Shown here in pieces: positions 9,458-39,461 of a DNA stretch of 64,000 nucleotides. Under the pieces are notes generated by a model. The model had not been told where the DNA came from. It worked only from the letters and a program-made list of their open reading frames with translations, and ran no database searches. The DNA comes from Auanema rhodensis (taxonomy: Eukaryota > Animalia > Nematoda), in contig OZ059896.1 in assembly GCA_964057225.1 (NCBI GenBank), positions 10,292,001 to 10,356,000 of the forward strand, in the 5' to 3' direction. Position 1 is the first letter of the stretch, and each line of letters begins with the position of its first letter. A program made the translations under genes and the position numbers.

Positions 9458-9800
9458 CTGAAAAGTTAAAAAATAATTAATATAAATCGGTAGAGAGAGA
9501 AAAAGAAACGCTAACATACAACCAATAATCATAAAAAAGATTATACCAACTTTGGAGCAAGCCTGTGTGCTGACGCAAACTCAGTGTTTCATACTTTGCG
9601 TATACACGGTAGGTGGTTGGGTAAATATCACGTTCTATTCAGTTTCTCTGCTATTTCTAGATTGTAGTCCGATTAACGACGTCTGTTTATATATTCATTT
9701 TTGCAATTTATAGAATTGTTGAATACTTAAACTTCATTCTGATTAGAGCAAAACAATAATTAGTGGCCATTTTCTATAAGTTCTTTTTTTCTATTATATC

Positions 9801-12578
9801 ATGGATGATTCGTTGGAAGATGGTGAAATACTTGATGATGATGATGATCATAGTACAATGTTGGTATAATGGCCCATTTTGCTTGTTTATTTCATGTTCA
9901 TGTGCATAATATTTCTTTGTAGAATTTTGCCTACAACATCTTCTGATTCGAAAGATAAGGAGAGTGAAATTGATAGGATCGTAGAAGAAAGCAAGGTTAG
10001 TCTTATATGTTTTATATATCAGATTTAAACGTTTAGTCCTGGAATGAACGGTCAGGTAAAACTGGCAAACCTAAGAACACTTCTGAACCTCTAGTGGAGG
10101 TAAATTTAGAGTAAGCATGCTGATGTAATTGTTACTGTTCTTTCAGCCAATAGTAGAAGATTCAGAGATACGCGCATTACGTTTAGCAGCTTTAGGAACA
10201 TTAGGAAAAACAGTTAAAGAAAAACTTGTCTTTCCTTCAAGTACCACTCGTAAACGAAAAAGCAGAGACTCAGAAAATGAATCATCAAACAAAAGTTAGA
10301 ATTTAAAAAAGTTTTTGTGAGCAAATTTTTCAACATTCAGTAAAGTCAACTCGTCATAAAACTGTTAATTCCAAATTGAACTCATCTTATCGTGACCGAG
10401 AGAAACTAGAATGCAAGAGTTTAAAGGAAAAAGATTCTGATCCTAAATCTAAGTTAAACAAGTCCGCTCCCGTTGAACATGCAAGGAGTAAGAGTCCAAA
10501 AGGTAAAGTTTCTACTAAGTTTCATTACAAAATTTTTTGTTTAGCTGTTATCAGTCGAGAAGAAAAAGAAGAGTCAAAGTAATTTCAATAGTTATTTTCT
10601 GTAAGTTTTATTTTATTTAGGACTTCTAGATCCAGAGTTACTGCTGATATGGTGCTGGGTGAAGAAAACAGGCATATAATTGCGGTATTTTAATTACATT
10701 ATCACTAAATTTTACTTTTTCGTTCCAGTCAAAACTGAGTGTTAGTCCCACTATTACTAATATTGAAGATAATTATGATAATGTTGGAATGGATATAGAC
10801 AGCAATAGCAGTGAGCCAGGTGAATAATATTATTGTTGTGGTTCTATATACATACTCTAGATTTTCACCAAAAACGAAATGAAGATGAGATTTGTCACCC
10901 TTCATCAATGAGTGTGGTAACTTCCTAATGAGATTTTCAGTATAGCAGAGTTTTCAAACAATTGTTTTAGGAACAGACGAAAGGAAAGATTTCGTCACAA
11001 AAATTCGGCATTTCTGACTCTGAAATTACGAGGACCATGTATAGGTGATTCATTTAATATAGTAGGGAATCTTAAAGTTTTATTAAGAAATAAATATGAG
11101 TCTCTAGAAAATCTAGATAAACTTGTTAAAGCTCGAATTGATGATATTGAAGAAACACTGGAAAAGAGGGATAAGCTGACGGTATGTACTAAATTGTGTA
11201 AAATTATTTTATGAAGTTTAGAGGGAGCTGGAAGATCTGACGAGCAAGTTGGAAATATATAAAAATGAATATGTTCGGGCTGTTGAAGAAAGAAATAATC
11301 TTAGGCAAGATTTATCTGAATACGAGGAAAGAAGAATAAATAAACTGCTATTTGGAGAGTATGTTTTAAAAACCGTAAATAAATTTTCACAAGTTATTCA
11401 GATCTGATATGAAACCATTGGACAGAAAACAAATTCATGCTGCTCCAAGTGAACAGAAAGAACTAAATGAGCAAATTCAAAATACTTCTATTGCAGTTGA
11501 AAATTTAGAAGTAACCCGATGGATATAAATGATTCAATGGTATAGTTTTGTTTTATAGGTCGATGACTCTATGAAATCAACAGATAGTTCAGTTAATGAT
11601 GAAGAACGACTTAGAAATAGTTTATTACGTAAATTTAAGTCTATTCAAGCTAACAAAGAAAAAGAGGTAAGATTAGTTATAATATTTATATATAGCCTGT
11701 AATTTGAATAAGTTACAGAATGCGAAGGACGATTCCTTTATTTCCAGAAAAACACATCAGTCCTCTATATCTAATAGTTTATCTCCTCTTGGTTCAAACG
11801 AGAGTGCTGACGAAGAAAATAGTAATAATTCATCATTTGCGAGCATTCGTGAATCTTTAGAGAATACTACGGTATCTAGGGACCTCAGTTATTCATTGGA
11901 CAGGTTATCTTCCTATTCTGAAAGGTCCCCAATTCTGAACGTTTAGTAATCGAGTTTTTCCTACTCGGTTTCTGCAACATCTTGGTTCAGTTGATCGAAA
12001 CCCATCGACAGAAGCATGCCCACATGAATTAATGGGAAGATGCAAAGATTATTCCTGTGCTTAGTGAGATTTTTCTATCAATATCTTTTAAACCTTGTCA
12101 TTCCTTAATAATCTTTTAGTCTACATTTACATGATCAAGACTTGGATGTTAGAGATCTCATTTTAATGTTCGTTCAGTTCATGTCTATTGGCAACCATGG
12201 GAGTAAGTAGCTATGCTACATACACTTTTTTAAATCATGTTTATAGATACTCGTAAGAAAGTAGACGATATGTTAGTTAAAAAAAAACATGACGAGACAG
12301 GTTATGAATTTTTTGTCCGTATGCTTCGGGGTAATTCAAAGACATCTTAGAACATGGCCTGTTAGTTAGCAACTTTTTTTTCAAAAAAATGAAATCCCAT
12401 TTAGGTCCATGTTTTGTTAACAAAGTGGTAAGTGATTAGAATTATAGTCCTGACTAGTTTTTTTCTGTAATTAACCTTCCCTTCAGTCGTTCAATTCTTG
12501 TTTTTTATTGTTACGGCTCGAAGCCAATCCATCATTTTGTCTTTAATTCAGAATTTCTCAAGGAAGAACATGGAGTAA
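9801..12578 (+). CDS. ZFC3H1/Red1-like zinc-finger protein (PAXT nuclear exosome adaptor-like), short form; 3' end uncertain
   Basis: N-terminal LEDGEI motif, LRLAALGT motif, EDNYDNVGMDIDS (cf. ZFC3H1 DNYEEVAMDTDS), a coiled coil, and a C3H1 finger CPHELMGRCKDYSCAYLH. Confidence 0.7.
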
Positions 12579-28073: not shown

Positions 28074-29003
28074 AGTGATTGTGTAGTCAATAGATTTAAT
28101 TTTTGTTCTACACTTAAGTAATATTCTGTATACGATTGTCTTAGACGTTTATAGAATGGATAAAGATAATTAGGTATTCCAGTTGTTATTAAGAAGTTAT
28201 CCTCCAAAAAATGAAAAATGCCAGAGAATAGCGTGATGACTGAAAATTATTTAAAATTATCGGTACACGCACAAAGATGACTATTGCTGTAGAACAAACC
28301 TTGATAAGGGTGCTGTTTGTTCAATCCTGCAAGTGTACACAAGAATATTGATTGTTGAAGAAACACTAGTTTTCATGAGCTTGAGTGGAACGAATTCAAA
28401 GCTTCAAATATGATTCATTTGTGTCTTGTTTCAAATATATTTTGGTTACCTATCCTCTCCCCATTCAACTCAGTTCATAAATGTAGAAACTTCCTTCCAC
28501 TTCTAATGTTGAACCAATATGGTGGCAACATGCTGATTGCTGATTGCAAGCAAGTATTGTTCGGTTTCGGTTGCTCACAATACTGACTATAGAAATGAAT
28601 AAATTTTATCCTGATGATACATCCAATGACCGTCTATAAACTAGAATATAATCGATAGACGTCACCCACTGTTTCCAATACCTGTTTTTATTCGTGTTTC
28701 GGTTGTTCCACATTTAACTAAATGCCCTTGTGCCTTCGTGCTTTATGCATTACAACCCTGTATACTCGCAATTTTTAAGATGTTTTAAGCATTACGTGGT
28801 CGAAATTGATTATTAACAAATTATTTATATTCAACAAAGCATTCAATATTTCTGTATCTCACACGGTTCATAGTGTCCTATTGAAAAGGGTTAGCGTTCG
28901 TATATAGTTAGTCACACTGTGTATTGATAGTCGTTTTTCGTATTTTCATCTAAGTCTATGTTCAAGCTTTTTTTTAGTTCTGATTTAGATTTTTTCTGTT
29001 GTC

Positions 29004-29977
29004 ATGACTCCTAATATATCAGTTTTTAAATATCCCCTTGGAGTTATTCGTATAGCCGAATTTGTAAGTCTTACATGTTTTACCAAAAAAACATAATTTG
29101 TTTAATTAATTTTGCCAATAATTATATTTTAAGATTTTCATAGTAATAGCGATTGCTGCTGTGAATAGTTGGTCAGTAAGTATTACTGCTGGATGTCCCA
29201 ATAATGTTAAAAATGTTACAATTGATACGCACACATTTACGTTAGTTTCTTCAATTTCTGACAGTCTTTTATTGTTTTTGATTTAGACTTTCTAATGTTA
29301 ATGTTATGACATGTAATGGTACTCAAACAGCATTTTGGAATTCGGAAAATAATGCTGGAGGGTAAGTTATTGCAAACGCCGCGTAAATTAATAAGCTATT
29401 CCAGAAGCGCTGGTTTCTTTTATTTCACTAATGTCACTGCTCTGATATATGTTCTTCTCATAACATTTGTTTATGTGATATTCTGGGAATTATATCAAAA
29501 TGAGAAAAGAATTGCTTTAGCGGTATTTTTTTGTTTTATGACGAGTTGGTTTGATTTTGTTTCTATAAAATAGGATCTTGGTGTAACCGCTCTTCTATTT
29601 GTTTTCTTTTTCTTTTGCTCTTCCATATGGTGGGCCGGATCAAACACAATAGGTCGAGCAACAAGGCAAGTTTTAACTTGATTGTAATATGTTACATTTA
29701 TTCAAAAAGTGCAGTTTTCTAAATCAATGAATTGCAGCGAGGAGGTCATTAACGGCAACTTAATTAAAAACGGTTTCTCGGAGCATGCTTTGATCCGTGA
29801 TACTAATAACGGAAAACTGGCTGTTTCAGTAGTATGTTCACTTTACTTTATAATATATACAGAGATCATTTTTAGATCTGTGATTGGGCTTGTGTATTGC
29901 TTTTTGCTTTTAACTGTTGGTTTGTATGGAAGGAAATAGTTCCTAGACCAGCTGAAAATCCAAGCCAGATTGCTTGA
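29004..29977 (+). CDS. sph-1: Synaptophysin-family MARVEL protein
   Basis: MTPNISVFKYPLGVIRIAEF, four TM segments, SSIWWAG, FNCWFVWKE; adjacent to isp-1 as in C. elegans. One GC-AG intron (29666-29737). Confidence 0.85.
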
Positions 29978-30076
29978 TCAACTTTTTAATTTAAAATTTC
30001 TTTTATTATTTCATTATATGAATATATCTTTTTTAATATAAATTTTTATATTTCCAATTAAATTTAAATTAATAAA

Positions 30077-33000
30077 CTATGTAAGAGATCGTATATCCTG
30101 CTCGACCTCAGCATTATTTATAGAATCCAAATCAGGGGAAGATAGTGCAAAATCATGTAATTTAAGTGAAGTAGTTGCCATATGAACCTTGAACTTATAG
30201 ATTATTCACCTAGAAAAGTGAAAGCAAACCTTGTGAGCAATCTTTTCATAATCTTCATCATTTACATATAAAGCAACAGCTATCTTTTTCGGGTGAGGAT
30301 GCGGGAGAATGTCACAATCAAACTGAATAATCAAATATAATTTTTGAGCTTCAAGGGGCATTATTACCAAAGCTCGAATGGATGACGCAATGACGGTTTT
30401 CTTGGATTCGTTCTTCAATACAATAGTGAATATCATCAAGTTTTTACATCTATAAATAGGTAGCAGGAACAACGTTATTACAAGAGCTCTATTAATACCT
30501 GTTGGTAATTGCATATAATGTATCACCTATCTGAATTTGCCCATTGAGCATGATGGCCACATGAGAAGCATTTTCTCTGACAGTACAGATTCTTGAACAG
30601 CTAGTCATAACAGATGCTTTACATACATCACGCAATTCAGTAGTTATTATTCTTAAATTTGTTTTATTTTTCACAATAAGTTTTTAAGCTATTACCTGAT
30701 AGTTTCCGCTTGAATCGGCGAAATAAACATATCAATGTCATCTATTAATAATACTGATGGCTTACTAAGTATTGCTAAACCAAAGGAAAGCATTTTTTTT
30801 TCGCTTAGTCTGTATATAAATATGTTAGGATTTTTTAAGAAAAATGTATTGCTTACGAAAAATGTTCCACATAGACATCTTCGAGATTTGCTAAATCCAA
30901 AATGCTGAGAAATTCTTGAGCAAACTTTTTGGAAGTAGAGTATCCATTAAGTCTGGCAAAAGCGATTATTGTTTCCAGCCCTGTCCATGATAAGAATAAA
31001 CGTATATCTCGAGGCACATATCCTATGTTCTGAGAAATGATTAATAAATATTGTAACTGCTATGATTACCATTTGAAGATCAGCGATGTGTCTATCGATA
31101 ACTATATAACCTGAATGAGGGTATTTTTGAGCAGAACATAATTCCATCAAGGTTGATCGAGATTCGTTTGTATCTCCTAAGAATAAATAATGCAATGCTA
31201 ACAGTCCAAATGGAAATTACCACAAAGGTAAAGCGATTGGGATTCAAACAAGGATAATCTACAGGATTGTTCAGAAACATTTGACAAGGGCACTGATTGG
31301 ACTTGCAGTACTGGTATGTTCTCCATCTCTTTATCTCGTAAGTCCCATAAGCTGTTATTTGATATTTCCACCTCAAATTCATACATAGAAAACTAACAAA
31401 TCTCAAATTAACAAACATTATCTTTTGTGTAGTTCCAAACTTCACTTATCTTTTGTTCAATTGTTCGACCTGTCTAAAGGTATATCTCTTAATTGGCAAT
31501 AAGCTGTTCTAAACATACAGGTCCTATAGAGGTTGTTTGTCCATTAGTTTGACTTTTCTCCAATGAACATGCATTATTATTTCCGGAATATTGTTTCGGA
31601 AATAGTTTTGATAAAAAGCGGTATAACTTTTCATTTTTGTTATTTTCTTTCATTTTTTCATTCTCGCGATTAGCTTTTTTGAATTTAAGAAACTCTCGTT
31701 TCTTGCGCTATAATATTCAAATAGAAGAGATCTAGTTATTATAAACTAAAATTTCAGTTAATTGTTTGAAAAACACAAACCTGAAGCCAAAATTCAAATA
31801 TGTTTTGATATCGCCGCATTGAACCTGAATACATGAAGAAAACGAAAAACCATATACACAAATGAAGTGCCGAAAGTTGAAATATAGATGATAGACGATC
31901 TAAAGAATAATTTAGCAGAACATAAAAATTTTGAGAACTGCTCAACTGTATTGCATGCTGTTTGAAGAATTACAAACATATATGCCATTAACAAAAGCAG
32001 GCATTAAGGGTGGAAATAGAAGCGCCATGAAAGCTACAAAATTAACCGACCACTAAAATAAAATATTAAATTAAAAATATAAAATAAGAAGAATCTATAC
32101 CTCATATCCAGGTCCAGTAGATATACTGAATAAATATGGCAAAATAGGTAAGAGTATTCCACCTAAAGAAATAAATGCCGACAAATATGCTACTCTATGG
32201 TTTGTAGCAGTTAATGCGCTAATATATACAATTGGTATAGCAGATAAATATGACAGTGCACAAGATATGATGGTTATCCTAAAATAGCTAAAGTTTTGTG
32301 AAATCAAGATATAAGATTACCACATGGACATTAAACATGTTCGAGGTAATATGAAGACGGCTAAACTGATTATTAATAATCCAAGGAAAATTATAAAATC
32401 CACGAAGAATATTGAAAACCAATATGATGGAGCTTTAGCGCCCAGAACGAAATTGGTAGGAATACAATTGTAACACTTCAATTCTGCCATAAACAGAGAG
32501 GCTTGTAAAGTGCAAAATATAAATAGCATCCCAACAATGAACATATTTAGCCAGTTCTCGGATCTATATAATTATCAGATTAGTCAAATAAATATCGTAA
32601 AGTTGAGCCTACATTGCTCCCAATAAAGCCGGTATTGGTATGGCACTGCCAGTATATTGTTTTTTCACATATTGAATCAAATCTCTCCATTGAGGTGCAT
32701 AAATAGTTTCAAGTGTTAAATTCGAAACTAAAATAAATAATAAGAATTTACAATTTAATTGAATTTACCCCCTCTAGGCGACGCATAAGAATTGTAATAT
32801 TCTTGTAATATTAAGAAATCACTAAAACGAGCAAACTGGGAGACACAAAGTTTAATTGAAGAACCTTTAAAAAAGCCTAAAATTCTATGACGATTAGAAA
32901 AACATAGTTGGCTAAGTAAACCTGATATAATCTGAGAAGAATGATGGAAGTTTGAACAATCATCAGTACTGTCGATACTTTTGCCGGATAGTTCATCTGT

Positions 33001-36000
33001 TTGGGAGGCCGACTGTGGTGATCTTAGTATAAATTTTGAAGTAGAATGAAATACTAACTGGATACTCAAGCGTTAGCTTGATATCTTTATACTTGTCAGC
33101 CATGTAGTTGAACATTTGATTATTGATGTGTATTTCACCTGCGTTAAATGAAAGATCATTTCATTTCATTGAGTTTTACTTCGATTAACGGTTCCTTCTC
33201 CTAATTTCAATCCAAGAAGAAGTGTTAAGACGATAGGCAAAATTACATGAAGAGCATGTTTCAATATTGTTTTACTCAAAAACGATATCTTTTGTGCTAT
33301 AACAAAACGCAATTCCTTATACAAAATCCATTTCGTAGGTTCTGCAATAGATATATATAATTCTAAACCATCAGTCTTATCTAAAAAATAAACTTGATCT
33401 AATAAATGATGATAATAAGTCCATTTTATATTTTGCTGCCTTTAAAGAGTCAAACTTTGCTGTCGGTAGTTGCACACATCTTGATATATGATTGTTATAA
33501 AATTTACAACGATATATCTTAACTGTTTATAAGCATCATGGATTGTTGGAGTTCTGATCTCAGACAAACAGATTCCTGAATCCTTTATACTTTTGATTTT
33601 TCCTAATGTTTTGGAATAACTAAAAAAATTAAAAATTATTCATGAAACGAATGAGCCAAACAAACAAAGCGGATGGTACCCGAGGAAGGTTGTACACAAC
33701 GTTCTCATTCGGCAATATTTTTCTTTCTATTTTTTTTCCTTCTTGTTTACCAAAGCAATCAATTAATATATTCTAATTGCATATATATGCGATGCGAAAT
33801 AGTTTTTAGCTTATGTACCTTAACTTCTGATAATTTTACATATTCTAAGCTTCTAGATGGCCATAGAACCAATTGCAGATTAGAGCAATGTCTGAAAATT
33901 TGAGGAATCAGTAAAACCTGAAGAAAACGCAAGAAAAATACTTTCGCTTGATATCAGTTAAAGACGCTGAGTCAAGAACTTCTCCATTAGATACAAAAAC
34001 GACAAAGTCAGCTATATCCTCAACGTGGGTGTAATCATAGCTGGTGAACACAATAGTTCTGAAATAATAGTTCAATAAATCATTCAAGATACGAACGTTG
34101 CACTTAGCTCCCTTATGTTTTTGTATAAAGTTGCATATTTTTCTTCGAGTTGAAATATTGCAATTGTCAAATGGATCAGTTAATAATATCAAATCAGCAT
34201 TAGAGATGAAGCAAAGCAATAGACGTAGAATCTTTTTTTGAATATTGCTAAGATCTTGCGGCATTTTTGTGATATATGGCAAGAGAGATAAATCATTTAG
34301 CATCACTTCTATATCGATGTTTTTCACATTTCTCTCTTTTTTAAGTAATTGGCAATGTTCGAGAACAGTCAATCCAAAAAAAAATCCTTTGTCAAACGCT
34401 TCCAGAATGGAACGATGTGGATTGTTCTGAAGAAGAAGATTTATACATATGTAGATTATTATTACACACAAGGAATGAATTTCCAGAAACGGTTATAGAA
34501 CCTGAGTATTCAATTTTCTGATCCAGTAATTGAAGAAGTGTATTTACACCATGACATAGAGGACCGTATAATGCTGTAATCTGCAACAAATCTTAATGAG
34601 TACAATTCATTGTACACCTTACCTTGTTAGAAAATATGCTCAAATTCACATTTTTCAAATCAACATCCTTCTTTTGTAAATTTGTAATTACTCCTTGAAG
34701 TTGAATTAAGACTTCATTGTCATCATTCCTTGTGACTTTTGAAGTTTGTGCATGGTGTAATTGAAAATTACTCGCTTGTTTAGACTTAGGAGTCTTTTTT
34801 ATAAAATCAATCAAGGCTATCACAAGCATTAATGTACAGTCCACTATTAAATATATGATGGGCACAATAGGTGAAATAGTCAATCCTCGAGCAAATGGAG
34901 CTGAAATTAGTAACTTTGATATATCATATTTCAAAATAGTTTTCTAAGAATGATAAGAATCTATCATTTGAACATGATTGAAAAATAAAGCCTACCTGGG
35001 ATAGGGTTGTTTACGGCTCTTAATACGTAATAGTAAGCATTAGTAAAAAATAAAGGATTATAAAAGGAAAAAGATAGATCTGACAAGAAAATCAGATTGC
35101 TTAGAGAAAGTAATCCAAGTATAGCTGAAAAATGCAGAAATTGTATCAATTGAAGGTTACTGCTTAACCTATGCTAGCAATACGACGCGATGGAATCAAA
35201 GTACATACGAGAAGAGCAAAAATTGAAATATTACAAGCATAAAGTAAAGCAGACGGTAGTACAAATTTAAGATACATTAACGTCTAAATAATCATAAATT
35301 TCATAAATTAATTGAGAATTATACCTGATTGTATAATAAAATGGGTATCCAGAAAAACACTTGAACTAAAATAACATTTGCTAAATTTATAAATAGCATT
35401 ACTAAGATATATAGTATGCTATGTATATTCACAGCTTTCATGATATCCTAAATTGTTGGCATAACATCTTTTACGTAACATATATCGAACGCACTCGAGT
35501 TCCGCTCTCGTAATCATTAAAAAAGCGAGAAATTTGTAAATAAATAGGAAGGAGACATATAATAGTTGAAGCTTGACCCAAAACAATAAGAGTTTTGGGA
35601 GAAGATTGCTTCCAAATATGCAGTGCGTTTTGAAAATGAAACGGTACTTCTGTCGAGCATTTCTGAATTAAGATTGGATTGAAATATAAATCAAACTGTT
35701 CTTCTACCAAAGACGAGGGGGCACATTTACATGTTATAAAATTATGTAGAAATAAAGCTGCCCGATTACTTTTCATTTGTGTTGAAGATGTCTGGTCAAT
35801 ACTCGATATATCCCAAAAATCCTCTTGATTTCTAAAGTAGAAAATCATTTCCAGTTCGAATGCAATACATACTTGCTGAAGCTCCAGTTAATGTCCACAA
35901 TACGAAAAGAAGCTTTGAAACTCTCTGGTTGGCATTTTTCTACATAAGCAAATGCTGAATAAGGAATAACTCATTAAATACACATAAAGCTAAATATTGA

Positions 36001-36440
36001 AAAAGTTCGTCTTACTTTCCACTTTCTGATGTTTTGCAACTTCATATATTTCGCTAATGTTATGGACAGGAATATTTATATCAGATGGAGAAGGACGAAA
36101 AAAAGCGGCACATTGCTGATCATGAAATACCTTTAAAGCCAATTTTATATTTATTAATAAAAGCAAACCAACATGAACATTTGGTGGTATGGAAAAAAAG
36201 GCACTAGAAATTTCGGAAAAAATGAGAGGAGTTGTAGTTGGTGTTTCATTGGGTATGGACTAACATTTTATTATATAATTTTGTTTTAATTTTGACTAAC
36301 CGAATAGCTTAGAATAAAAATTGAAAGCAAAGATGTAATGAAAGCAATCAAATTTTCTAATACAAACTGTTTTTGATGATTGCCATTACGTTTAGTTTGT
36401 ATATTTAGCAGAAAACGAAGATGTTTGACGAAAATAAATG
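30077..36440 (-). CDS. Highly divergent full-size ABCA-like transporter with degenerate NBD1 and NBD2; start approximate
   Basis: TMD-NBD-TMD-NBD layout. NBD1 ITALYGPLCHGVNT...LSNIQKKIL...LILLTDPF...RTIVFTSYD; NBD2 LFLGDTNESRST...KPSVLLIDDID...SVMTSCS...VAIMLNGQI; C-terminal DFALSSPDLD resembles ABCA DYSVSQTTLD. Confidence 0.75.
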
Positions 36441-36785
36441 CTAAAATATGCTTTTTATATCATTATAATACAAAAGTTATAGAAAAATACCCATCTATCA
36501 TCCAAATCACATTAATAAAAAACAAGAATAAGAGTTATGCTTCGTGGCTTCTTCACGTGTATTAACAATTAATATGCTAATTTCTGAAGTGTTTGAAAGA
36601 AGCTTATTCATATGTTTGACTTTATTCTAATTTTGTTTGGAAAAATATATGATGTATTGTAATATTAAAAAAAAGAGTTTTGAAAAAAAAATCTTCTTCA
36701 TAAAGTTTTAAAAACCATGCTAACATATAATATTCGAAAACAACTTCACAGAACAAACATTCATATATGATATACTTCAGCCGTT

Positions 36786-37808
36786 TCAATTCTCTCCAAT
36801 TGCTTTCACCCAACGTTTGGGAATTAGAAATTTGGCACCAAATTTGCGAGTTCTAAACCGTATTTCAGCAAATTCCTCGTCCTGAAGTTAACAACAGATT
36901 TATCAAATGTAAAGATTTACATACTATTAGCCATCGAATATCTGAACGCAACTGAGCGTTTAATTGCCTCGCACGATTAGCCAATTTTGGACGAGAACAT
37001 CCATCTAGTGATAACAATGGAGAATACCTAGACATGACGATAGCGGAGGTTCCATTATCAACAATATCTAATAATTTTCAAAATATGAGATATTTAACTT
37101 CGATAAAATAATTATTACTGCTGTAATTTCTCTTTGATAAAGAAGGCTCGCTTTTTCTTATCATTGGTGTTACATTTTTTGGAAATAATGAATCTCCATA
37201 GGCGATAAACTTATTACAGTTAACTTCAGCATCATTATTTCTAAGATAATTAATAAAACACATAAATTAAAAAAAGATATAATACTTCAAATTTGTGCTT
37301 TGACCGTCTGCATCAAGAAGGTTAGCTTTCTCTTCCTCGTCAGATTCATTGTAGTCTCCGTTCAGAGATGCTACATTCTCTAGACCAAAGAAAAAATAGA
37401 TAAAGAGCTGTGGGTGCAGATGACACCTGAATTGTTATGTTTTTCTTCATTTTGGTTATCCCTTCCTCTCCTGATTCTTTTTCCATCTGACTTCCGTTTA
37501 TGCCTTCTTGTACTACTTCTTCGTCTTCTAGTCTTGGAGCCGCGCAATATAGCTTTTCTTGTTGCATATTTCTTTTTCTTTTTCGATGACTAAACTATAT
37601 AATTCATTTCTATACATCTTCAATAAATATGCATTACTGACATTTTTTTTGGATTTTACTTTTGAATTCTTCTTTTTTGTTTTTGAATTCTTTAATTCTT
37701 AAAGGCCAAAATTCAATGATATTCAAAAATGTAACTCTCACTTGCCATAGTCCATATTACGCAAATAATAGAAAATGAGGATATGCCAATAAAAAATATT
37801 TCATTCAT
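36786..37808 (-). CDS. Hypothetical protein with N-terminal signal/TM anchor and Lys-rich linker
   Basis: MNEIFFIGISSFSIICVIWTM followed by GT-AG exons ending ...IPKRWVKAIGEN*. No domain recognised. Confidence 0.5.
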
Positions 37809-38292
37809 ACTACCAGAATCTCAGTTTTGGCAAAAAAAATAAAATTGTTCACGTGAACACGTGATATACTGTACCCAACCTTTCAACTTTCAACAATTTC
37901 TAACATAACGGAAAGTGAAATGGACTTTGAAAAAAACTGATACTGAATTCTAAAAATATTTCTTATATCACTCATTTTTTACATTGTTTCGCATATAAAA
38001 AAAGTTGTTGATTACAAGAGAATTGCTATATTCAACGGGCTTCTCCTTTCTTCTTCAATATTTTATCATGAGCCTCTGGCCAAATTTGAGCTCTTATCAC
38101 ACGAATCACTGAAAGGTCAGTTCGCATTTAAAGCATTTCTTATCTTGAGAATTGATGAGTCGTTTGTCATTGATTATACTCGTCCGAAAGTCCTCAGAAC
38201 GTTCTCACCTTATAGGCCTATGGCCTGACACCAGCCGGTCTGTTCCAGAATCATACGCGAGCAAAATAAGTTAAACTTAATAAGCTAGAACA

Positions 38293-39461
38293 ATGAGAAA
38301 TACTCATCTTCGTGTTGGTCCTATACATAATCCACCACGTCGCGAAAACGAACTTTTACATCTTGAGCCTTTCAAATCCCCACTCGGTTACCTTCGCATT
38401 TTCGAACTGGTTGGTTTCTATATTTTTACCTTAAGTAGTAATCAATGGAGCTTAAATTTTGTCGAACTTATGTTATATAAAAAATATTTGTGTGGATCAA
38501 TTCTTATTAGTTTCATTTATAAAAGCTTCGTTCATTATTCACGCAATTAATCAAAAATCATTCCATCTGATTCATCATTTTTATTTTAGATCATATGCAT
38601 TGTATGTATATCAACAGTGAGCTGTTGGTATATGGAATTGGATTATAGTTGTCGGAACGGATCAACATCAGTATATCTTCATCAGAATAGGATAACAACT
38701 TTCCAGTAATCGCTTTGTTATCAAGGAGTAATTAAACTAACTCGCTACTTTAGCTTATCTCAGGTTGAGTTTAAAGGATGTGATGAAGTTAACAGGACTC
38801 TTTGGCATCAAAACGATGATGCAAGATTGTGAGTAGTTATTAGTTTATATGAACTTACAAATCATGTTTAATTACAGAAATGTACGTTGGTTTTACATTG
38901 TCAGTTCATTAGGTTTGATAGCATCTGTAGTAATCAGTGTAACATACCTCTTTTTTTGGAGATTATACTGTGAGCATGATATTTGCTCATTAGTGGTATT
39001 CACATTATTATTTAACGAAAGTTAAAAAAAATATTAAGGACTTAGCTGTTTCTGTACTATTGACAATTATTTATTTAATTTGTTCATGTGTATGGTGGGC
39101 AGGTGTTAGCATTATTGGAACAGCAACTAGGTTATTCATAAATAAAAGCCTATTCATTACTTTGACTTTCAATTTAGTGAAGAAACTATCCGCCAACTTT
39201 TCACTGAAAATGCGGGTTTCTGGGACTTGGACGACATGAACATGTCGTTTGAACGTGAAGTTAATCAATGGGTTCTTGTTATTTCCGTGGTAGATCTTTA
39301 TGTATTTTTCGATTTTTTAACAACTTTCATAGATGTTGAATTGGTGTTCTTTTGGCCTAAATGCAGCAAGTTCAACATACATATTCAAGCGTTAGTTTTC
39401 ATTCAATCTGCAAAATATAAAACTCATTTTAGATCTGAAAGGACATATATACCCTACATGA
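38293..39461 (+). CDS. Second, divergent synaptophysin-like MARVEL protein (sph-1 paralog)
   Basis: EPFKSPLGYLRIFEL, DLAVSVLLTIIYLICSCVWWAG...GTATSEE. Intron positions parallel those of the 29.0-30.0 kb gene. May have upstream exons (38070-38290). Confidence 0.75.

Follow-up and report, generated by a model that had tools for sequence, protein, structure and literature searches.

How far can an ATP-binding cassette (ABC) transporter lose its ATPase and still be kept as a gene? It is the ATPase that defines ABC transporters, many of which tolerate one degenerate site. The question is raised by an ABCA-like gene on the minus strand of a 64,000-nt window of the nematode Auanema rhodensis (contig OZ059896.1, positions 10292001-10356000, in a 181-Mb genome; all coordinates given here are window positions unless another contig is named), for which the sequence-only reading had proposed a complete transporter layout with both ATPase domains dead. 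Our analysis leans, with moderate confidence, towards a real, single-copy, lineage-restricted and fast-evolving descendant of the ABCA family, whose reading frame would have been selected and whose two ATP sites are predicted to be non-catalytic.

The gene model was curated by hand from direct reading of the DNA and from the intron map of the ortholog in Auanema sp. JU1783 (described below); each exon was checked for frame, phase and GT-AG borders and was translated in its own phase. In nucleotide-binding domain 1 (NBD1), Walker A reads GPLCHGVN (34565-34542) where the ABCA consensus is GHNGAGKT, with valine replacing the lysine. The Q-loop region LEAFDKG (34385-34405) has no glutamine and carries aspartate/lysine at that position, and the signature is LSNIQ (34252-34238) in place of LSGGQ, both glycines being gone. 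Walker B, LILLTDP (34192-34172), has LDEP changed to LTDP (aspartate to threonine, glutamate to aspartate), and in the switch region FTSYD (34048-34034) tyrosine stands for histidine. NBD2 has been altered at the same five places. Its Walker A, G|DTNESRS (31176-31154; consensus GVNGAGKT), begins with a glycine encoded by a split codon and has arginine for lysine, its loop also carrying acidic and polar residues; the Q-loop GYVPRD (31006-31023) has arginine for glutamine; the signature is S|LSEK (30809-30797) in place of SGGNK; Walker B, VLLIDDI (30754-30734), has IDDI for LDEP, with the aspartate retained and the catalytic glutamate changed to aspartate; and the switch region MTSCS (30594-30608) has cysteine for histidine. 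Walker A, signature, Walker B glutamate, Q-loop glutamine and switch histidine have therefore all been replaced in both domains, and neither domain is predicted to be a catalytically competent ABC ATPase. Each composite site is formed by one Walker A and the signature of the other domain, and therefore both sites are degenerate on both faces.

A scan of all six frames of positions 29000-38500 (9.5 kb) found no canonical Walker A, xSGG or hhhhDE motif, and therefore no alternative exon can rescue the motifs. Two genes served as controls. The pmp-4-like (ABCD) gene of the window has intact motifs (GPNGCGKSS and LSGGEKQR), as does a canonical ABCA paralog on contig 6 (6834623-6837994, minus strand; GHNGAGKST, LSGGMKRKL, ILLDEP and TTH), which at 28% identity is the gene of this genome closest to the NBD1 exon. 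On these points the sequence-only reading held up well: every motif string that it had quoted was found in the minus-strand exons at its place, the loss of catalytic residues from both ATP sites was borne out by the motif reading and the scan, the pmp-4 NBD that it had offered as an internal control is indeed intact, and the alternative exons that it had named as a possible source of restored Walker motifs were found in none of the six frames.

Family, structure-database and profile searches were run with single exons of the gene, and an ABCA profile was built from 12 full-length ABCA proteins. These searches trace the gene to an ancestor among the ABCA full transporters, as had been proposed before. 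The best Protein Data Bank (PDB) relatives of the NBD1 exon (a 194-aa piece) were four ABCA4 entries, all aligned at their NBD1 (E 2.3e-5), and NCBIfam returned many ABC ATPase models together with TIGR01257 (rim-protein, ABCA4) for the same piece. Matches to the ABCA profile were collinear along the exons, exon 11 falling on NBD1 (E 8e-16), exon 22 on transmembrane domain 2 (TMD2; E 8e-6), exon 29 on NBD2 (E 6e-4) and exon 30 on the block of signature and Walker B (E 3e-4), with weaker collinear matches for transmembrane segment 7 (TM7), TM10-11, Walker A2 and the C-terminus. Exon 34 was placed on the last columns of the profile, a correct position with a weak score (E 0.4), and the exons of regulatory domain 1 (R1) matched both the JU1783 ortholog and the corresponding profile region. 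TMD1 was aligned to ABCA through the TMD1 of the ortholog (hhalign), and protein-language-model neighbours belonged to ABCA-type clusters throughout. Other searches returned little: no exon matched Pfam PF00005 at E <= 1 when ten exon pieces were searched separately, PDB searches with the single sequence of an NBD2 exon and of a TMD2 exon gave weak matches or none, and the full-length JU1783 ortholog scored 15.4 bits against PF00005 (cut-off 25) and had no PF12698 match.

Alignment of that ortholog to the ABCA profile by hhalign gave a probability of 99.4% (E 2.5e-21) over TMD1, NBD1 and R1. Its AlphaFold model has a mean predicted local distance difference test (pLDDT) score of 52.6, with 70-87 in TMD1 and NBD1. 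In a Foldseek search with this model the best 21 PDB matches were all ABCA4/3/7/1, and the query-normalised score (TMq) was 0.40-0.46 for ABCA in comparison to 0.17-0.22 for ABCB, ABCC and CFTR; both Foldseek results are partly circular, as the model was built with an ABCA alignment.

Hydropathy revealed 6+6 membrane segments plus an FPP..PA re-entrant stretch, and two NBD-like blocks follow in order, so the full TMD-NBD-TMD-NBD layout claimed earlier has been kept and the order TMD1-NBD1-R1-TMD2-NBD2-R2 appears to be real. Extracellular domain 1 (ECD1) extends from TM1 in exon 2 to TM2 at the end of exon 5, and ECD2 from TM7 in exon 17 to TM8 in exon 22. The same single-chain order, with an ECD after TM1 and TM7, is found in ABCA full transporters (human ABCA4, ABCA1, ABCA3 and ABCA7; nematode CED-7 and ABT), and ABCA-type blocks are retained in the A. 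rhodensis gene, namely ITA(L/F).G, LTV.EH, FPP..PA and, probably, the C-terminal D(Y/F)..S...L. The differences are equally plain. The ECDs are very short and poorly conserved, unlike those of ABCA1 and ABCA4. In further contrast to ABCA transporters, the catalytic motifs are replaced in both NBDs, ABC_tran and ABC2_membrane_3 fall below the Pfam threshold, and the gene evolves 4-12x faster than its neighbours and has been seen only in the Auanema clade.

The A. rhodensis genome holds no second copy of the gene. When the NBD1 exon was run with HMMER against 1.84 billion representative proteins, nothing was found below 1e-10; the best match was CAI4228089.1 (E 7e-8), an unnamed predicted protein of 1,143 aa from Auanema sp. 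JU1783 that is collinear with the A. rhodensis gene, and the other matches were ordinary ABC ATPases with intact motifs. Word-index protein searches with the 194-aa NBD1 piece, with the whole of CAI4228089.1 and with its residues 870-1143 returned only CAI4228089.1 itself. Gene order is kept between the two species over about 25 kb (window 18800-47000) and runs from the ABCD transporter through rhodanese, ESSS, ThiF/rhodanese, MARVEL, the ABCA-like gene, a second MARVEL gene and Rieske isp-1 to three kinases, which are tandem and MAP-kinase-like. This synteny identifies the CAI4228089.1 gene as the positional ortholog. About 22 of the 27 intron positions in the 28-exon JU1783 model are shared with the A. 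rhodensis gene in both position and phase, and six exons are identical in length. The conserved neighbourhood resembles the Caenorhabditis elegans F42G8/B0218 region, which is not known to contain an ABCA gene.

NBD1 of CAI4228089.1 is also degenerate but in a different manner, with a shortened P-loop, an LKNND signature and asparagine for the switch histidine, and it retains the Walker B DE that A. rhodensis has lost. The JU1783 protein ends after TMD2 and possesses neither NBD2 nor R2; the next gene follows 136 bp on, and no NBD2 remnants were found at the locus.

The JU1783 protein bears on two alternative explanations of the motifs. In the first, a non-hydrolytic switch, one site (the NBD2 P-loop being the likeliest) would bind nucleotide, and binding alone would drive a conformational change as in the degenerate sites of CFTR, SUR and TAP. 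ABC proteins in which one site does no more than bind nucleotide are well documented, and NBD2 retains the first glycine, an arginine at the lysine position, the following serine and the Walker B aspartate. However, its P-loop has aspartate, asparagine, glutamate and serine at places that call for glycine and small residues, both glycines are missing from the partner signature LSNIQ, NBD1 has valine at the lysine position, and Q-loop glutamine and switch histidine are gone from both NBDs. The JU1783 ortholog is moreover without NBD2, so that a sandwich of two NBDs is not essential for the family, and we consider such a switch very unlikely. We give hardly any credence to the second explanation, in which assembly errors or wrongly chosen exons would have produced the frame break (see below) and the degenerate motifs of a gene that is in truth a normal ABCA. 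The genome assembly is of long-read style and comprises 112 contigs, and several exon boundaries were placed solely by homology at about 25% identity. Against an artefact, the motifs are located in long open exons with conserved splice sites on either side, the 9.5 kb scanned contain no canonical motif in any frame, the JU1783 ortholog was independently assembled and annotated and is likewise degenerate, and a non-repetitive insertion of 20 nt is untypical as an assembly error.

Has the reading frame been maintained by selection? The ABCA-like protein is about 25% identical to its JU1783 ortholog overall in comparison to 67-90% for the proteins of neighbouring genes, which agrees with the earlier description of the gene as fast-evolving. 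For the neighbours the non-synonymous divergence (dN) was 0.07-0.25 and the proportion of synonymous differences (pS) was 0.5-0.8, at or near saturation. Our selection test was restricted to the six exons of equal length (227 codons), whose alignment is set by intron positions and not by similarity. Amino-acid identity in these exons was 26.9% in comparison to 7.4 +/- 1.7% for shuffled codon pairs, and the proportion of non-synonymous differences (pN) was 0.50 in comparison to 0.72 +/- 0.02, about 11 standard deviations below random, while pS (0.76 versus 0.74 shuffled) was saturated and fully randomised. Conservation was concentrated in the membrane helices, the base of ECD2 and the NBD1 core (exon-wise z 6-13), with TMD2 being the best conserved part of the gene. 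It was absent from the ECDs, the linker and the catalytic loops, and the latter differ between the species. Since a neutral sequence would by now be unrecognisable and filled with stops, the gene has been under purifying selection for most of the time since the split, albeit much weaker than that acting on its neighbours. In the comparison of non-synonymous and synonymous change with a sister species, suggested earlier as a way to recognise decay, pN lies clearly below the shuffled value, pS is saturated and dN exceeds that of the neighbours.

The coding frame contains 0 internal stops in about 1,588 codons, whereas the two alternative frames of these exons have 108 and 120. All 33 of the 33 introns have GT-AG borders, and 32 of them measure 40-147 nt (mostly 41-52 nt). 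As judged from its sequence, the gene is not a decayed pseudogene, in which many stops or frameshifts, lost splice sites and a pN as fast as synonymous change would be found.

The frame is nevertheless broken at one place, by a 20-nt GT..AG element. Taking out exactly 20 nt (31977-31958) restores the length of the exon and its homology to JU1783 exon 26; if the element is retained, a TGA is met at about 31937-31935, before TM12 and NBD2. Two other introns could be drawn at this junction, one of 32 nt with usable signals but below-median splice scores, and one of 47 nt whose donor is weaker than any other in the gene. Across 264 kb of the genome the lengths of GT..AG pairs peaked at 41-49 nt, and the range of 30-39 nt showed no excess. 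In animals, introns shorter than about 30 bp are considered to be missing except in myxozoans and dicyemids, and an intron of 20 nt is implausible in a nematode (PMC13644364). The earlier description of an intact gene with canonical splice sites can thus be upheld for the absence of stops and for the GT-AG introns, but not for the junction at 31977-31946, which offers no intron of normal size and signal.

Five results weigh against the selected ABCA descendant that we favour. The junction requires an intron of 20, 32 or 47 nt that is atypical for the genome, and JU1783 has none there; dN of about 0.83, 4-12x that of the neighbours, fits strongly relaxed constraint; NBD2 is wholly absent from the JU1783 ortholog, a loss to be expected of a gene in the course of dismantling; the protein searches described above yielded no ortholog beyond the Auanema clade; and no transcript-derived protein matching the NBD1 exon was found in protein-library searches. 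This can be interpreted as a young pseudogene, in which the motifs were lost under long relaxed selection, the copy was just disabled by insertion of the 20 nt, and the downstream exons are still open for lack of time. In its favour are the interruption of an exon that is continuous in JU1783 and restored by exact removal of the element, the near absence of animal introns below 30 bp, a genomic intron peak that starts at about 41 nt, the poor scores of the 32-nt and 47-nt alternatives, the extremely fast evolution of the gene, the deletion of NBD2 in JU1783 and the lack of a transcript-derived match.

Other observations argue against a young pseudogene. There is one lesion in 34 exons and 4.8 kb, with no nonsense codons where each alternative frame has about 110 and with all other splice sites intact, and therefore any loss of constraint must have been very recent. 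The 1.2 kb downstream of the lesion (NBD2/R2) is fully open, and the junction does offer a 32-nt GT-AG intron whose signals are usable. Given a sole lesion followed by such an open stretch, the element at 31977-31958 would be either spliced atypically or very recent. The selection signals weaken the pseudogene explanation, which appears rather unlikely to us. Mammalian ABCA pseudogenes such as human ABCA17P, in which function has been lost in one lineage, have multiple stops, frameshifts or missing exons; the A. rhodensis gene differs in having at most one lesion and in showing protein conservation across saturated synonymous divergence.

In this descendant of an ABCA full transporter the residues for ATP binding and hydrolysis have been replaced in both composite sites. 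If the gene is indeed selected, the protein would still be made but would be unable to act as an ATP-driven pump, its NBDs might survive as structural modules, of which NBD2 proved dispensable in JU1783, and any function would be exerted through the membrane and extracellular parts without ATP hydrolysis, possibly as passive lipid or sterol handling, as a scaffold or as a receptor. The roles of scaffold, receptor or passive conduit had been proposed by the sequence-only reading together with a possible germline or sperm-type expression, and all of these are conjectural. We put forward only tentatively this more specific view of a 12-helix pseudo-transporter of ABCA fold that is maintained by selection, neither binds nor hydrolyses ATP, uses its NBDs structurally with NBD2 open to loss, serves for example as a passive lipid/sterol conduit, receptor or scaffold, and evolves several times faster than its surroundings.

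ABC proteins with one degenerate site (ABCG5/G8, CFTR, SUR, TAP1/2, Pdr5/Cdr1 and TM287/288) likewise tolerate the loss of catalytic residues in a site, and in CFTR and SUR the ABC fold serves a purpose different from pumping. These proteins keep one consensus site, however, and their degenerate site still binds ATP, whereas in the A. rhodensis gene both sites are without the lysine, the glycine pair, the glutamine and the histidine. The literature that we found contained no paper on a doubly degenerate ABCA and concerned single degenerate sites. If our reading is correct, a full-length ABC member stripped at both sites and yet selected would be to transporters what a pseudokinase is to kinases, and the ABCA membrane and extracellular scaffold would have an ATP-independent use. 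The species pair would then form a natural deletion series, with both NBDs dead in A. rhodensis and NBD2 removed in JU1783. If the gene is dying instead, it would reveal the order of dismantling, from catalytic motifs to a whole domain and then to the frame.

The features of the gene model are collected in the table below.

Table. Positions of the features of the A. rhodensis ABCA-like gene within the window, listed from the start of the coding span.
Feature	Coordinates	Strand	Evidence and remarks
ABCA-like gene, whole coding span	30077..36494	-	34 exons, 4,767 nt, ~1,588 codons with the 20-nt element taken out
First coding exon, ATGG (4 nt), followed by a 50-nt intron	36491..36494	-	Same 4-nt exon and phase 1 in the JU1783 model
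TMD1 with short ECD1 (TM1, ECD1 of ~190 aa, TM2-TM6), exons 2-9	34623..36440	-	Hydrophobic segments in exons 2 and 5-9; collinear with the JU1783 ortholog
NBD1, exons 10-12	33942..34580	-	PDB, NCBIfam and ABCA-profile matches
Intron of 45 nt, stop-free and in frame, inside NBD1	34059..34103	-	Phase-2 intron of JU1783 at the corresponding site; flanking exon 117 nt long in either species
Regulatory domain 1 and linker, exons 13-16	33394..33891	-	Exon lengths and phases match JU1783 (107 nt and 96 nt identical)
TMD2 (TM7, ECD2 of ~125 aa, TM8-TM12), exons 17-25	31781..33341	-	Hydropathy; exon 22 on ABCA TMD2 columns; exon-wise z 6-12 against JU1783
Second in-frame, stop-free intron of 45 nt	32877-32921	-	Intron position common to JU1783
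Anomalous GT..AG element, 20 nt, shifts the frame	31958..31977	-	Corresponding JU1783 exon (exon 26) continuous
Charged linker exon, TMD2 to NBD2	31519..31707	-	Open, in phase, GT-AG sites
NBD2, exons 27-31	30499..31371	-	ABCA-profile matches of exons 29 and 30; only weak PDB phmmer matches
Regulatory domain 2, exons 32-34, ending LHDFALSSPDLDSI (30119-30160), then stop at 30079-30077	30077..30449	-	Weak profile match

The ATG lies at 36494, and the real start is 50 nt upstream of where the sequence-only reading had let the gene begin; at the other end, before the stop codon at 30079-30077, the stretch LHDFALSSPDLDSI resembles the ABCA C-terminal motif. That reading had also overlooked both 45-nt in-frame introns, the 20-nt element and the ortholog without NBD2. 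Either of the 45-nt introns, if left unspliced, would add 15 residues and keep the frame. Twelve in-frame bases, ATTATTCTTTAG (31911-31900, minus strand), stand at the position of a phase-1 intron of JU1783 and now encode four translated residues; they resemble the 3' remnant of an intron whose imprecise loss would have been tolerated by the frame.

Several candidate features were discarded during curation. A 13-aa insertion in NBD1, seen at first reading, turned out to be the 45-nt intron of that domain, and an in-frame stop near 33443 became intronic once the conserved phase-2 donor at 33524 was used. For a 32-nt intron near 35480 there is a normal alternative of 47 nt. Automatic exon chaining by open reading frame (ORF) length and splice signals joined several exons wrongly, leaving out TM1 and Walker A2, and curation with the JU1783 map took its place.

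Upstream of the gene on the same strand lies a small two-exon ORF (37035-36789), which has 50-56% amino-acid identity to the JU1783 locus at 9578-9833 and no Pfam match. An AATAAA is present near 36625 after this ORF, about 125 nt before the ATG of the ABCA-like gene. The spacing is operon-like and, if it does reflect an operon, would imply that the ABCA-like gene is transcribed. MARVEL-domain genes (38581-39292 and 29001-29995) flank the ABCA-like gene in both species, and their identity to the JU1783 counterpart is about 45% for the upstream copy and about 82% for the downstream copy.

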